Source: Podarcis filfolensis
Taxonomy: Eukaryota
Direction: 5' to 3' (one strand)
Assembly (NCBI GenBank): GCA_964270895.1
Contig: OZ185441.1
DNA length: 64,000 nt
Both the position numbers and the translations under genes were made by a program. Positions 11,799 through 61,612 of this stretch are shown here, piece after piece. The notes beneath the pieces were generated by a model that saw nothing but the letters and a program-made list of their open reading frames with translations, made no database searches and was not told the origin of the DNA. Position 1 is the first letter of the stretch. Each line of letters begins with the position of its first letter.

Positions 11799-11988
11799 NN
11801 NNNNNNNNNNNNNNNNNNNNNNNNNNNNNNNNNNNNNNNNNNNNNNNNNNNNNNNNNNNNNNNNNNNNNNNNNNNNNNNNNNNNNNNNNNNNNNNNNNNN
11901 NNNNNNNNNNNNNNNNNNNNNNNNNNNNNNNNNNNNNNNNNNNNNNNNNNNNNNNNNNNNNNNNNNNNNNNNNNNNNNNNNNNNNNNN
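11799..11988. other. Assembly gap (190 N)
   Basis: Run of N. Confidence 1.
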
Positions 11989-37374: not shown

Positions 37375-37542
<168 letters not shown>

Positions 37543-40179: not shown

Positions 40180-40920
<741 letters not shown>

Positions 40921-41219: not shown

Positions 41220-41416
41220 GGTTACAGATAGGTAGCCGTGTTGGTCTGCCATAGTCAAAACAAAAAAATTTTTTTTTCTTTCCAGTAGCACCTTAAAGAC
41301 CAACTAAGTTAGTTCTTGGTATGAGCTTTCGTGTGCATGCACACGAAAGCTCATACCAAGAACTAACTTAGTTGGTCTTTAAGGTGCTACTGGAAAGAAA
41401 AATTTTTTTTTTGTTT
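41220..41416 (-). mobile_element. Fold-back Penelope-like terminal-repeat insertion; 12-bp TSD CATATAAGAACG (41208-41219 / 41417-41428); contains a 130-bp perfect palindrome at 41273-41402
   Basis: Base-by-base symmetry about 41337/41338; exact flanking direct repeat; near identity to the 52761-52979 copy. The Penelope assignment rests on the hammerhead-bearing repeat (inference from established knowledge). Confidence 0.85.
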
Positions 41417-42410
41417 CATATAAGAACGCATCCCCTTCTCTGCTCCCCCATAACCAATGCATTTTCATCTGTTGAGGCACTCCTCATATTCTGCATCACC
41501 GTGTTGTTCTTGACTCTGTGCACACACCATACTTTTAAGACTGTGCACGCACTATACCTTTTTTAAGTACTGTACATTTATCCCTCTGTTACAATTCCCA
41601 GCAACCCTTAACAAACTACAGTGCCCAGAATTCTCTGAGGGAATAATGTAGGGCATAGGGGCGTGTTCTTTAACTCTCATTTGCTTAGAAACAGAGCTTC
41701 TAGATTTCCCCTAATATAGTCAAGAGCAGAGAGAAAGTGAGTTCTTATATGTCTCTATATTGAGGAGAGATCTCGCCATTCTAGAAAGTGAAAGAACATC
41801 ACGCCTATATTCCAGGGTGCGGAATAAAAACATGCGCAAAGTACCCACAGAGTGGCCAGGCCAGACTCAACTGGGTCCGCCTAAAAAGTAGCGGGATGTT
41901 ATCGCCTTCGGTTTCCAACAACATTGCCTAGCTAGCCTTTGATTGTGCAGTTTGCACTCGCTCCGCGACGAAGTGATAGCAAAAACAACATGTTTTTCCG
42001 AGCATGCACAGAGCGCCCGCCCTTGGCCGCTGAGCAACCACGCGCAACTCTCAAAACACCTGACGTTAAAAGGATTTAAAGGAGGGTCGAGTAGGACTTA
42101 GCACCTTTCCTTTTCAGGAGACAAACCCCCCTTAAGGCGCTGTTCTACTGAGCTACAGGTTTTAGGCCGGGTTTCCGACAAGCACCAGGGGGAGCTGTTC
42201 GTGCGCAGCAGCCCCGTCCCCTCTCCGGCCGTTAGGCTGGCTCCTCCCCGAGAAGGCGGAGGGCTGGAGCGACTTCGGCGGAGCGGCGAGGCGAGGCGAC
42301 GGGAGGCGCTGCCGTAGCAGCTGTTTGACAACCCGCCGGCGGCTGGGCCTCTCCGGAGCGAGAGGTGCGTTTCGGGCGGGTTCCGAGCGGCTGCAGCTCC
42401 AAAGACCTCG

Positions 42411-42413
<3 letters not shown>

Positions 42414-42452
<39 letters not shown>
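42414..42452. repeat. (GA)19 microsatellite
   Basis: Read directly from the sequence. Confidence 0.98.
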
Positions 42453-42455
<3 letters not shown>

Positions 42456-42835
42456 CGCACCCGTCCGGTAACTTGGGTCGCTCTCTGGAGAGGGTTGGGA
42501 AGTGCGCGCAAAGAGCGCATCCCTCTTCCCTGGGGGTGGAATATTCGCCCGAAGTAGAGGAGGGTGAGGAAGGGGCGTCTTGGCGCGCGCGGGGTGCTGA
42601 GGGAAGTCCCCGCATGCATCCTTTAAGAGTTTGGGGGCAGTTTGGGGCTCTCCTCGAGGGGCTTCGCTCGGGTAGGGGGGAGTTTTTGTGCGCGCAAAAT
42701 CCTCTTTTTTTGGGTGGGGGGAATGTTGCACCTTGGAGTCTTATTCCTCGGACTGGGAGTTGCGCCTTTCTTTAGAGGAGCGCAGACTGCGCGGGTCCAG
42801 GAGTGCGGAGAGGCCCCGGGTTTTGTTGTAATCTG

Positions 42836-45950: not shown

Positions 45951-47151
45951 GATTATGAAAAAAAGGCAAGGGGGAGAGGGGGAAAGGCTGTTATTCAAGC
46001 CATCTTTGTCTGCACCTGATAGAGTCTTAAATGTGGGAGGAGGTAGCAGACATTCAAATGAGACCCTTTCAGGTGTTTTGCATGTATCAGGTTGCAACCC
46101 AAGCCTTCTGGGAAGGAGAAAAGACATAATGATTGAGTCTCCATTTCTGCAAATGCACAACCACCCCTTGCTGCTTAGTTTTGCCTCCATCCTTTGGTGA
46201 AAAACACAGGTTCCTTTGGTAGGTAGAGAATAATAATAAAAATGCAGTCATTATACAAAAATTGGTAGAGATAAAATATAGCTGCTGTGCTAGGTGAAAA
46301 AGTAAACAAAACCCAAATTGGGTAGCTTTACCCGGTGGCTGGAGGGAATTCTCCCTTTAATAATAAAATACCATCTCCAGGTGCTATAAAATCCTTTCCC
46401 TCTAGTTTAGGATTCTGGCTAAATTTGGGGTGTTTTCCATGTTACAAAAAACAAACAAACAAGCCAAGGTTAACTTGTGCCATAAAGAAAACTCCACAAT
46501 ATATATTAAGGCAATGCCTTTATTGAGCCAACCAAAATGTTATAAAGGCCTGTGGAATTATAAATCATGGTACAGATGGGAACGTGTAACTGCCAATTTT
46601 CACATGTAATTGTTGGAATAATTTGAACATCGTGAATTAGAAGCTTAATAATGACGCACGATGCTAGATGTGTATTGTTAAAAATAATTACTCTAGTGTG
46701 TGTGAAGGCAAGCAGAAGGAAGGGTTAGAAGCTAGTTGGTACCTCCATCAATGAGGGAAATAATGGTAAAGGATATCCCTGCACTTATACTGCCTCTGGA
46801 TTATAGTTTTGGAGTTCCTGGAAAAATGATTGTGCTGGGCTGCTGCTTGCCACACTTCAGTGTGGTTTTGTTTTAAACAATCTTGTTTGGGCAGGCCTCT
46901 TGTCAGCTTGTCCCGTTGACTATTCAGAAACCACATGTGTGGTTTTCTTGTGTTGTAAGACTACAGTAAGATCTTGAAAAGAATAGATAATAAAAGAGGT
47001 TGTATTTTTTTCCTGTCTCATTTGCACGTTTCTGATGATTTCTGAGTAATTCAAAGTTCTTAATAAAGTAGCTCTTAGAAAAATGAATTTCTGTTGTTGA
47101 AGGTTGCATCTGATGGATCAATAACCCTATATCACTTCCAAAATTGAAAAA

Positions 47152-47253
47152 ATGATGCCTGAGGACCTAGACCAGTTTCTTGAAGAACAAAAAGCAAAGC
47201 TGGCACAAGACAAAGCAAAGCTTGACAATGATCCACCTTACATGGAAATGCAG
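47152..47253 (+). CDS. CSPP1: CSPP1 first coding exon ([34 protein letters not shown]); exon starts at 47103
   Basis: aaaATGATG start, CAG|gtagga donor, acceptor ttgttgaag|G at 47102/47103. Confidence 0.9.
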
Positions 47254-47540
47254 GTAGGAAATTGATACTTTATTTTTTAAAAATGGATGAAGAATATTAT
47301 GACTGTTCTCCTGTATGTAAACAAGTCTGGAAGATAGTGTTTTCACCAGTGGCAATCCCTCTTTAGAAAATGCTAGGGAAATTCTGAAGTCCCTCTGTTG
47401 CATTGCAATGCAACCTACAAAGTAAAACAAGGTTGTCAAACCTCTGGCTCTCCAGATGTTATTGGACTTTGACTCCCATCAACCTCAGCTGGCATGGCCA
47501 ACAGTCTAGGGCCACAGGTGCCACACCCCTGAACTAAATA

Positions 47541-51800: not shown

Positions 51801-52760
51801 TGCCTATGAGAATCTCACAAGCTGGACATGATGGTGATGTCCTTCTTCTGTTTGTTCTAGCAATTGGTATCTAATGATAAACCACCTCTGTCATTGGGAG
51901 TTCCATTTAGCGGATGTTAACACTTTTATGCCACACTTCAACAAACTATATTAGAGGGGGGAAAGCAATAGCATATTCTACTGACTAATGCAGGGCTTTA
52001 GCTGACAACGTAAACTAGGTACTACATGTGATGCTACTTACTAGTCAAGATTGTTCCCAGCTGCAGTTAGCTAAATATTTATTTTACAGTCTTGCCGTTG
52101 TACATATCTCTCTGCCTTTCTGTCAGCTGCAATGATGTTATAGGGTTAGCTTTGGTTGAAATAGTCCTATGATGTCACAAACAACAAACTTATGCAGAGG
52201 ATGTGGCCATTTTTGTTACACAGTATAATGTGCATTATGAGGTGCAAAAGTTAAATTGTTGTCATGTGCCCTCAGTTGCATAGTTTCCATGAACCAGAAT
52301 AGAGATTGGGAACTTTTTGGCCTTCCATATATTGCTGTCTCCAGCCACCATGGCTAACGGTCAAGAATTATGGGGGCTGTAGTCCAACAACATATGGAGG
52401 ACTATAGGATCTCCATCCCTGAACTCGAACTTTGTTTGAAAGTGTTTAAAATTATATATGTCTAAAGGTTTCATCCTTTGAAAATACTCCGCATATACCA
52501 GTGTTGAAACATGAACTAACTTTGAGACAACTACATAGTTCACTCTTTTGGAATTATCTCAGTGATTAGCTCAGCTAATTTTTTCTTTAAAGTAATACTG
52601 CTCTTTGGTTCCTTGGAATGTTATTGTAAGGTGTGTTTCTTTTAAATGGATACAGTTAGAGCGGCATACATTGATCTAATAAATTGTTTCATTCCGTTTG
52701 TAGATCATTTTCTTTCGAAATAGCGTATCAACCCTCACTTTCCTTCCAGATAAATATACT

Positions 52761-52979
52761 AAAAACAAAAAAAAAATATTTTCCTTCCAGTAGCACCTTA
52801 AAGACCAACTAAGTTAGTTCTTGGTATGAGCTTTCGTGTGCATGTATCTGAAGAAGTGTGCATGCACACGAAAGCTCATACTAAGAACTAACTTAGTTGG
52901 TCTTTAAGGTGTTACTGGAAGGAAAAAAATTTTTTTTGTTTTGACTATGGCAGACCAACACGGCTACCTATCTGTAACT
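52761..52979 (+). mobile_element. Fold-back Penelope-like terminal-repeat insertion; 13-bp TSD AGATAAATATACT (52748-52760 / 52980-52992)
   Basis: Inverted arms 52761-52844 and 52861-52942, a unique tail ending TATCTGTAAC, an exact TSD and an embedded hammerhead motif. Confidence 0.88.
52844..52881 (+). ncRNA. Minimal type I hammerhead ribozyme motif (Penelope-like-element type); predicted cleavage after C52877
   Basis: Stem I GUAU(52844-47)/AUAC(52878-81); core CUGAAGA (52848-54); stem II GUGUG/CACAC with CAUG loop; GAAA (52870-73); 1-bp stem III A-GC-U; CUC cleavage triplet. Confidence 0.8.
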
Positions 52980-53143
52980 AGATAAATATACTGTTCTGTT
53001 TCACTGTTTCTTAAAAATAAATAAATAGAAATTTACATAGTTTAATCCGAGGTAGCTTTAATCGCTCCTCTTTCACTGCTTTTTATAGCCAGCTTCCATT
53101 GCTTCACAACTCCGAGATTTCTTTAGTGACTTTGAAAGGGGAA

Positions 53144-54731: not shown

Positions 54732-54938
<207 letters not shown>

Positions 54939-60214: not shown

Positions 60215-60627
60215 CATGACACAGACACAAACAAAAAAGGCATTGCTGTCACCAGATCCCAGCCAGCATTACATACCACAGCATTACAGCCACCAATAAG
60301 AGATGAAGAATTCTTCAAGAAAGATGCTTGCACTTCTACAGATACCTTTGAAGAGCTGTCAGAAAAGAGACAATCAGTAGATCAACACCACAAACCAAAG
60401 AATGACGTTGGACATGGGGACACCCTGTTACACAAACAACTTGATGAAGTATTGAACATTTCCAACAGAAAGCACCAAAGACTGGATAGCAGACCTGAGA
60501 CCTTTTCTAGAAGGCATCACAGGTTTGATGAAGGTCATGATCCTGAAATAGATGATGAAATGGACCCTAGATTTCGATATGAAAGCGACTATGACAAAAA
60601 GCCACTGAGGGTCTTTCATGCTCAAAG
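60215..60627 (+). CDS. CSPP1: CSPP1 large exon (HDTDTNKKG...EMDPRFRYESDYDKKPLRVFHAQ-R)
   Basis: gtgttaacag|CAT, AG|gtaact, 413 nt open reading, C-terminal part resembles human EMDERFRYESDFDRRL. Confidence 0.88.
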
Positions 60628-61612
60628 GTAACTTTAACTTCCTGGCACTTTGGGCCAAACTAGACATGACACCTTTCTGTCACTCTGTGGTTTTTATAAG
60701 AACTAATAGCCAATATGAGGGTGTCCTATTTTTGTTGGGATTGTACTGAAGAGAAAAAGAATGGTGTGGCCCTTCTGAAAATCTCCCCGTAACCCATTAC
60801 CAGACTTGAAAGAACAGTTCCTGTTTGTGCTCATTCATAGCAACTCCTCAGTCTGCTATTAATACCCTTAAGAACACCTGACTGCTGATGATGCATTTAG
60901 CATCACCTCTCCTTTATTGTGCAAAACAGGTGCACACTGTTTGGCAAATTACAGAAATAGAGCCGTCTCCCTTTTCTGTCTCTATCCATATGTTAATTGA
61001 GTGAAACAAACCACCTCCAGCCCAGAAGAAGGATGTTTGTAAACTTCATTTTTTAAGCTAAGGCTGGCACTAGAATATGGTGTGGTAATAACGTTACTTC
61101 AGTTCAGTTCAACTACTGCATGTGATTGTGCATTTAGAGTAGAGCCTTATGTTCTACCATACTAAGTCTGCATTTCTATCCTGGGTGCAGCTGTACAGCA
61201 GTTTTGAAAGGGAGGGGAGAATATAAATATGCAATGGACATCAATCCTAGAATCCACACATGTCTGTGACTTCATCTCACTCTGATTCTTGGCCATTTTC
61301 CTATAAGCTCTGACAACTGTACTACCTCTGTGGGTTACGTAGTCAGAGTGACATAAATTTCAGTTAGGAGAAATGTGTTGTTTTTTAAAAACAGTTCACA
61401 ATTACTTTCTGAGAAGGCAGGATTTTTGTTATCTGGATGTCCAGAGCTTTAGCATAGATGAGGGCCCCAAATTCCTACCACCTTGCAGCAAACACCTGTG
61501 AGAAACCTCTGTTTCTGGCAATTACCGACACCTCAACTTCATCAGTTTTCCATCTTTTCTAAAATGGTCAGTTTCATTGGGCTAAAAAGAGCGATTTCTT
61601 CTCTTTGATCAG

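Follow-up and report, generated by a model that had tools for sequence, protein, structure and literature searches.

A minimal hammerhead motif in a Podarcis filfolensis intron, probably carried as a passenger in a Penelope-like retroelement insertion

Introduction

The question raised by this locus is whether a hammerhead motif lying on the sense strand of an intron is a working ribozyme, capable of cutting the pre-mRNA of its host gene, or a passenger brought in by a mobile element. The motif was picked out in a first-pass annotation of a 64-kb stretch of Podarcis filfolensis DNA (the whole of which is called the window here) as a minimal type I hammerhead of the form established for Penelope-like elements (PLEs). 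Minimal hammerheads (min-HHRs) of metazoan PLEs have been described in detail (Cervera and de la Pena, 2014; PMC4209133). These workers reported them from reptiles (turtle and snakes), and the published examples are mostly solitary remnants. A hammerhead so placed raises two issues, the first being how such a sequence came to lie in the intron and the second being what, if anything, it would do in the host transcript.

The hammerhead motif

The + strand at 52844-52881 reads GTAT-CTGAAGA-A-GTGTG-CATG-CACAC-GAAA-GC-TC-ATAC (38 nt), and these letters agree with the spelling, the core nucleotides, the 4-bp stem I, the 5-bp stem II and the self-complementary AGCU given in the first-pass annotation. 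Taken as a minimal type I hammerhead, on the basis of the sequence and a descriptor and with traits as in PMC4209133, the motif opens with helix I, in which 52844-47 pair with 52878-81 (4 bp), followed by the CUGAAGA core (C3-A9) at 52848-54 and an extra A after A9 at 52855. Helix II is formed by 52856-60 with 52865-69 (5 bp and a 4-nt loop), its closing pair being G10.1 (52856) with C11.1 (52869). Next come GAAA at 52870-73, of which 52870-72 are G12-A14, then A15.1, G15.2, C16.2 and U16.1 at 52873-76, with the palindromic GC at 52874-75, and finally C17 at 52877, so placed that the predicted cut falls between 52877 and 52878. The core positions C3 U4 G5 A6 N7 G8 A9, G12 A13 A14, A15.1/U16.1 and H17 are all present.

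Two segments of the motif can pair with themselves. The helix II sequence, GTGTGCATGCACAC (52856-52869), is a perfect 14-nt palindrome at the DNA level and is fully self-complementary, and the AGCU at 52873-76 is self-complementary too, the intermolecular 4-bp duplex that it would form being worth only -2.5 kcal/mol. On its own, the 38-mer is predicted to form stems I and II with little stability (-6.8 kcal/mol, z = -0.44). An ATG lies within helix II/loop II; the frame that it opens reaches a stop after 9 codons and forms no ORF.

How unusual the motif is was gauged on both strands with a descriptor for minimal hammerheads that follows the published one: four or more base pairs in helix I, then CUGANGA, 0-1 extra nucleotides, a G-C-closed helix II likewise of four or more base pairs, then GAAA, a palindrome of 0, 2 or 4 nt, U and H. 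This descriptor has a single match in the 64-kb window, both strands included, at 52844-52881, and none in 300 first-order-Markov simulated 64-kb sequences, where a relaxed version also returned nothing. Because the window yields this single match against none in the 300 simulations, the hammerhead motif is real and far beyond chance.

Beyond the published descriptor, four traits emerge from the PLE min-HHRs, namely one nucleotide added behind A9, G10.1 paired with C11.1, a palindrome at 15.2-16.2 and family-like occurrence (PMC4209133). The sequence at 52844-52881 shows four such traits, including the extra A at 52855, G10.1-C11.1 and the palindromic 15.2-16.2. Helix I, with 4 bp, is short and open, and helix II, with 5 bp and a 4-nt loop, falls below the 6-8 bp quoted for min-HHRs. 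This architecture, together with the insertion context set out below, supports the earlier identification of the motif as a PLE-type minimal hammerhead.

The covariance-model check proposed alongside that identification gave no hammerhead. The Rfam hammerhead families concerned (Hammerhead_1, Hammerhead_3, Hammerhead_II, HH9 and HH10) have no match in the whole window at gathering thresholds, and searches at E<=10 on 301 nt and on 53 nt also returned no hammerhead family. The matches below threshold were to miRNA-precursor families only, reflecting the generic long hairpin in which the motif is embedded. We do not take the silence of Rfam as a refutation, because it took a dedicated descriptor to find the min-HHRs in the first place (PMC4209133).

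The insertion and its sister copy

The motif sits within a 219-bp retroelement insertion at 52761-52979 on the + strand (copy 1), delimited by a 13-bp duplication and by its match to a second copy, and composed of an inverted left arm, the hammerhead, a right arm and a tail. The left target-site duplication, AGATAAATATACT, occupies 52748-52760 and is one half of an exact 13-nt direct repeat (11/13 A/T), the other half being the right duplication at 52980-52992. The left arm (52763-52844, - strand) is an inverted, 5'-truncated second copy of the element; it is paired throughout the predicted fold, where it would lock the 3' half of the ribozyme by antisense pairing. The right arm (52861-52942, + strand), assigned from the inverted repeat and the alignment of copies, is the sense copy and runs from helix II to an A/T run. 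The two arms, each of 82 nt, make up an inverted repeat that is 93% complementary with a 16-nt spacer, and the hammerhead lies at its loop end. Beyond the right arm, at one end only, is a 37-nt tail (52943-52979, + strand) that has no complement in the left arm and carries an AC-rich CCAACAC at 52955-61.

The end of the tail, TATCTGTAAC (52970-52978), and the start of the hammerhead, TATCTGAAGA (52845-52850), share TATCTG. The insertion could therefore end, on its 3' side, within a degenerate repeat of the hammerhead start belonging to a following unit, as would be expected of a tandem parent, or the resemblance could be due to chance.

Stop-free stretches within the element are short. Neither a PLE reverse-transcriptase nor an endonuclease ORF occurs in or near it, nor was a pLTR, or an ORF of the telomerase-like RT plus GIY-YIG EN type, found beside the motif; the motif is single in the 64 kb, and the element contains no direct tandem repeat, its repeats being inverted only. 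A tRNA-derived SINE was considered and rejected, since ARAGORN found no tRNA-like head in 52700-53000 and the internal T-runs would terminate Pol III.

The second copy (copy 2), recognized by alignment with copy 1, lies at 41220-41416 on the - strand and consists of the palindrome and the tail with no CUGAAGA box. Its arms, of 75 nt each and with no spacer between them, are at 41263-41337 and 41338-41412, and it is flanked by a 12-bp target duplication of its own, CATATAAGAACG, at 41208-19 and 41417-28 (8/12 A/T). The palindrome, about 150 bp in length, is situated between GC-rich islands at ~40500-40800 and 42000-42800. Spacer-less palindromes of this type are prone to cruciform formation and to replication slippage.

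The two copies match from end to end and, outside a 20-nt indel, are ~97% identical, with few differing positions. Their tails are the same except for the last base, and the starts of their left arms are no more than 1-2 nt apart; it is the central junction that differs. The 20 nt that copy 1 has and copy 2 lacks (52845-52864, + strand) contain the CUGAAGA box and are bounded by a 9-nt direct repeat, GTGTGCATG, at 52836-44 and 52856-64, such that the indel may equally well be placed at 52836-52855. A further difference lies within the arms themselves, as both arms of copy 1 carry GGAAGG where both arms of copy 2 carry GGAAAG. Since these variants are shared between the arms of each copy, the arms of each insertion derive from one template, and the two insertions derive from different templates.

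A BLAST search of the element against the window, with 53002-53040 masked, returns these two copies only. Words of the element do, in addition, occur in DNA runs from four organisms (0.79-0.95) and in RNA contigs from four (0.26-0.42), and the family is on this account common to relatives and present in transcriptomes, a result that says nothing about cleavage. A scan of viral contigs for copies of the family found none. Two loci from a metagenome scan were set aside as chance matches, lacking helix II or any homology.

Origin of the insertions

PLE insertions have been characterized by strong 5' truncation, often with an adjacent inverted 5'-truncated copy, and by a tail of 30-40 bp that is often found at one end only, these features being generic to many unrelated families (Craig et al., PMC8557442). 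Here, too, an inverted 5'-truncated partner is present in both insertions (arms of 82 nt in copy 1 and 75 nt in copy 2), the 37-nt tail of copy 1 recurs on one side of copy 2, and the target duplications, of 13 bp and 12 bp, lie in A/T-rich DNA. It is therefore probable, in an argument drawn from two copies, that the insertion belongs to a young and abundant retroelement family of the PLE type and that its hammerhead is a passenger inherited from the parent element.

A precedent for how such an insertion might be built is provided by Poseidon_Ac (PAc) of Anolis carolinensis. In A/T-rich DNA, the PAc protein cuts the two target strands and extends both, and its reverse transcription starts internally at two sites, the tail being the stretch that lies between them (PMC11167929). 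Uncleaved RNA is the dominant template in that system (PMC11167929). By the PAc mechanism, inverted copies arise because both target strands are used.

Transferred to the present locus, this scheme would make the insertion two 5'-truncated copies of the 3'-terminal module of the element, set head to head, the module running from the hammerhead through ~65 nt to the A/T run, with a 36-37-nt tail on one side only and a target duplication of 12-13 bp around the whole. We infer, after PAc in vitro, that a GIY-YIG endonuclease/RT complex would nick both target strands and that reverse transcription would begin on an uncleaved template RNA, from two internal sites whose positions are fixed. The cDNA begun at the proximal site would give the left arm, and that begun at the distal site the right arm and the tail, both being copied from the same RNA toward its 5' end. 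The truncated ends of the two cDNAs would then be joined to each other, within or beside the helix II sequence GTGTGCATGCACAC. On this scheme one of the cDNAs of copy 1 would have been extended 20 nt farther, capturing the complete minimal hammerhead, while in copy 2 neither cDNA would have reached that far. Both copies run past the predicted cut site, which argues that their templates were not cleaved by the hammerhead, in agreement with PAc.

Because the junctions fall in or next to the palindromic helix II, the 3' ends of two nascent cDNAs could anneal there. One may speculate, though we think it rather unlikely to be the case, that helix II also serves as the point at which two nascent cDNAs, one primed from each target strand, anneal and are joined. 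Were this so, it would supply a concrete mechanism for the inverted-repeat insertions of PLEs, which are otherwise unexplained; the ribozyme sequence would be kept partly for a role at the DNA level, and the position of the join would decide whether the hammerhead is left intact or deleted.

The foremost alternative, in our estimation a possible but somewhat unlikely one, places the fold-back in the parent rather than in the act of insertion. The transcribed and retrotransposed unit would in this case be the fold-back together with its tail, a non-autonomous and SINE-like derivative of a PLE or retrozyme in which the hammerhead is a locked passenger, and copy 2 would have lost its 20 nt between the GTGTGCATG repeats at a later time, or else copy 1 would have gained the duplication. 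Such a master would account directly for the near identity of the outer ends and of the overall architecture of the two copies, although fixed start sites of reverse transcription explain fixed outer ends equally well. It would account, too, for the bounding of the 20-nt indel by exactly the 9-nt repeat, as for slippage at a hairpin tip, and for the private variant common to both arms of each copy. An RNA hairpin of some -140 kcal/mol, however, would be a difficult template for reverse transcription, and an inverted partner with a one-sided tail is generic to PLE insertions, which points to formation at insertion (PMC8557442). Of the two, the assembly of the head-to-head insertion from two truncated cDNAs is the more likely, on the evidence of two copies.

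Folding and self-cleavage in the host transcript

In the reading of the first-pass annotation, the motif is an active self-cleaving ribozyme that could cut the pre-mRNA of CSPP1 in the course of transcription, or could pair in trans with RNAs from sister copies. In its favor, the core nucleotides are intact without exception and the motif is in the sense orientation within the intron, and PAc has a hammerhead of the same design that is active in the presence of its protein (PMC11167929). The arrangement of the insertion around the motif is what tells against it. The left arm is perfectly complementary to the 21 nt at 52861-52881, a segment comprising the 3' strands of helices II and I and, between them, the GAAA, the AGCU and the cut site. 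For the whole element a single hairpin is predicted, at -139.4 kcal/mol (z = -22.9), and when the hammerhead stems are forced, with an open core, the energy rises to -99.0 kcal/mol, a penalty of ~40 kcal/mol corresponding to P ~1e-28. The hairpin is already the minimum free energy (MFE) structure of a transcript that ends at 52881.

Since the left arm is transcribed first, it would pair with the 3' half of the ribozyme as the latter emerges, giving a hairpin of ~82 bp in which the catalytic fold would not be populated. With the left arm removed, stems I and II become the MFE structure, a result that can be counted in favor of an active ribozyme as regards its parent. The hammerhead is thus predicted to be foldable in the parental context and not to be foldable in copy 1. 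Energies of this kind take no account of A-to-I editing, helicases or RNA-binding proteins, and any one of these could make the hairpin less tight.

The second obstacle is the lack of a partner. Because the AGCU leaves no loop, the monomer would be without helix III, and the descriptor finds no second hammerhead in the 64-kb window that might serve in a dimer. Two monomers, when cofolded, are predicted to form a fully intermolecular duplex by way of the 14-nt helix II palindrome (-30.6 kcal/mol); a classical hammerhead dimer shares helix III, whereas the duplex modelled here would share helix II.

What is known of related ribozymes points the same way. Min-HHRs were inactive in vitro as monomers and weakly active as dimers (PMC4209133), and the PAc hammerhead, which cleaves only in the presence of its protein, has in vivo no RNA-seq reads that start or end at its cut site (PMC11167929). 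In sister copy 2 the core has been lost without consequence. From the antisense lock and the absent dimer partner it follows that no meaningful self-cleavage of the host pre-mRNA would be expected, and we consider both the co-transcriptional cutting and the pairing in trans proposed at first to be very unlikely.

Least tenable of all, and hardly to be credited, is a fold-back DNA transposon (MITE) in whose terminal inverted repeats hammerhead-like boxes arose by chance: the long inverted repeat, the small size, the A/T-rich insertion sites and the sub-threshold Rfam matches to MITE-like miRNA hairpin families would suit it, but the target duplications are unequal (13 vs 12 bp), the ends are asymmetric with the 37-nt tail on one side, the inverted repeat is not terminal and reaches the center, and the palindrome does not require the four hammerhead traits.

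Host gene context and significance

The insertion at 52761-52979 has + strand coding exons on either side, at 47125-47262 and ~54816-54920, and is therefore intronic and in the sense orientation; a further exon is at 60452-60628. The + strand exons received no name from Pfam or from the protein atlas, and we take them, by reference to the human protein, to be CSPP1-like. On the - strand, an exon at 37411-37542 encodes a JAB domain with a JAMM motif (Pfam JAB, E = 3e-12) and is COPS5-like. Two GC-rich islands lie between this minus-strand JAB gene and the + strand exons, and the islands, which are those around copy 2, are likely the divergent COPS5-like and CSPP1-like promoters. The layout is consistent with a COPS5/CSPP1 head-to-head pair, on the basis of the JAB/COPS5-like neighbor and of the human CSPP1 protein. 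The earlier placement of the motif in a sense-strand CSPP1 intron accordingly stands as to intron and orientation, with the name of the gene being owed to the human protein and to the neighbor.

Two other features of the window may be recorded. A perfect (GA)19.5 microsatellite occupies 42414-42452, in the island of GC-rich sequence that lies upstream of the first coding exon on the + strand, and a run of 190 N at 11799-11988 marks an assembly gap or a masked stretch.

For CSPP1 the insertion would seem to be of little consequence, and the motif is not suitable for annotation as a gene-regulatory intronic ribozyme. The realistic effect on the host RNA would be a long stretch of intronic double-stranded RNA, a near-perfect duplex of ~82 bp as predicted, which is plausible as a substrate for RNA editing or small-RNA pathways. 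The hammerhead insertion is an ordinary copy of an abundant repeat, of a kind already known. Its modest interest lies in the fact that two copies, viewed side by side, display the PLE signature, with outer ends that stay fixed, a tail on one side and a head-to-head center that varies. The coincidence of the head-to-head junction with the palindromic helix II is a mildly interesting lead.

Comparison with known systems

The intronic hammerheads of amniotes, HH9 and HH10, share with the present motif a position on the sense strand of an intron in a protein-coding gene. As described (de la Pena & Garcia-Robles, 2010), they are single-copy, ultraconserved and conserved across amniotes, of canonical type III and recognized by Rfam, whereas 52844-52881 is a minimal hammerhead in a multi-copy repeat with no Rfam match.

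The non-LTR retrozymes of animals (Cervera and de la Pena, 2020, PMC7229834; Li et al., 2026, preprint 10.64898/2026.07.22.740005) resemble the element in being small, non-autonomous and PLE-linked, with type I hammerheads, and monomeric dispersed derivatives of them exist as well. They are distinguished by head-to-tail tandems, by canonical hammerheads with loop-loop contacts and by circRNAs. The element described here, in contrast, is an inverted, head-to-head insertion in which one minimal motif occurs.

The likeness to the PLE min-HHRs (PMC4209133) extends through most of the motif. Both have the type I topology, a short and open helix I and an intact CUGANGA / GAAA / H17 core; both have one unpaired nucleotide between A9 and G10.1 and a G10.1-C11.1 pair; both lack a real helix III and have a palindromic 15.2-16.2 (AGCU) that implies dependence on a dimer. 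The copies are in both cases dispersed and mostly solitary, and sometimes occur as pairs on opposite strands. The differences are that the Schistosoma families have a helix II of 7-8 bp, as opposed to the self-complementary 14-mer (5 bp) found here, and that the present copy is outside any recognizable pLTR with an RT-EN ORF and is buried by a perfect antisense arm.

A further parallel is with PAc of Anolis carolinensis. Outside the features that follow, there is by eye no evident sequence similarity to PAc, and the unit here is a non-coding one of 200-220 bp with no ORF. The two hammerheads nonetheless appear by eye to be of the same design, CUGAGGA-U-GCCUGC...GUGGGC-GAAA-CG-UC^AGG in PAc as compared with CUGAAGA-A-GUGUG...CACAC-GAAA-GC-UC^AUAC here, and in both an ATG lies within helix II/loop II. 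PAc has ACAACAC at its start of reverse transcription, 82-89 nt past the cut, and CCAACAC is found here, again by eye, 78-84 nt past the cut. Shared as well are ends fixed by internal starts of reverse transcription, a tail of 30-40 nt and the use of both target strands.
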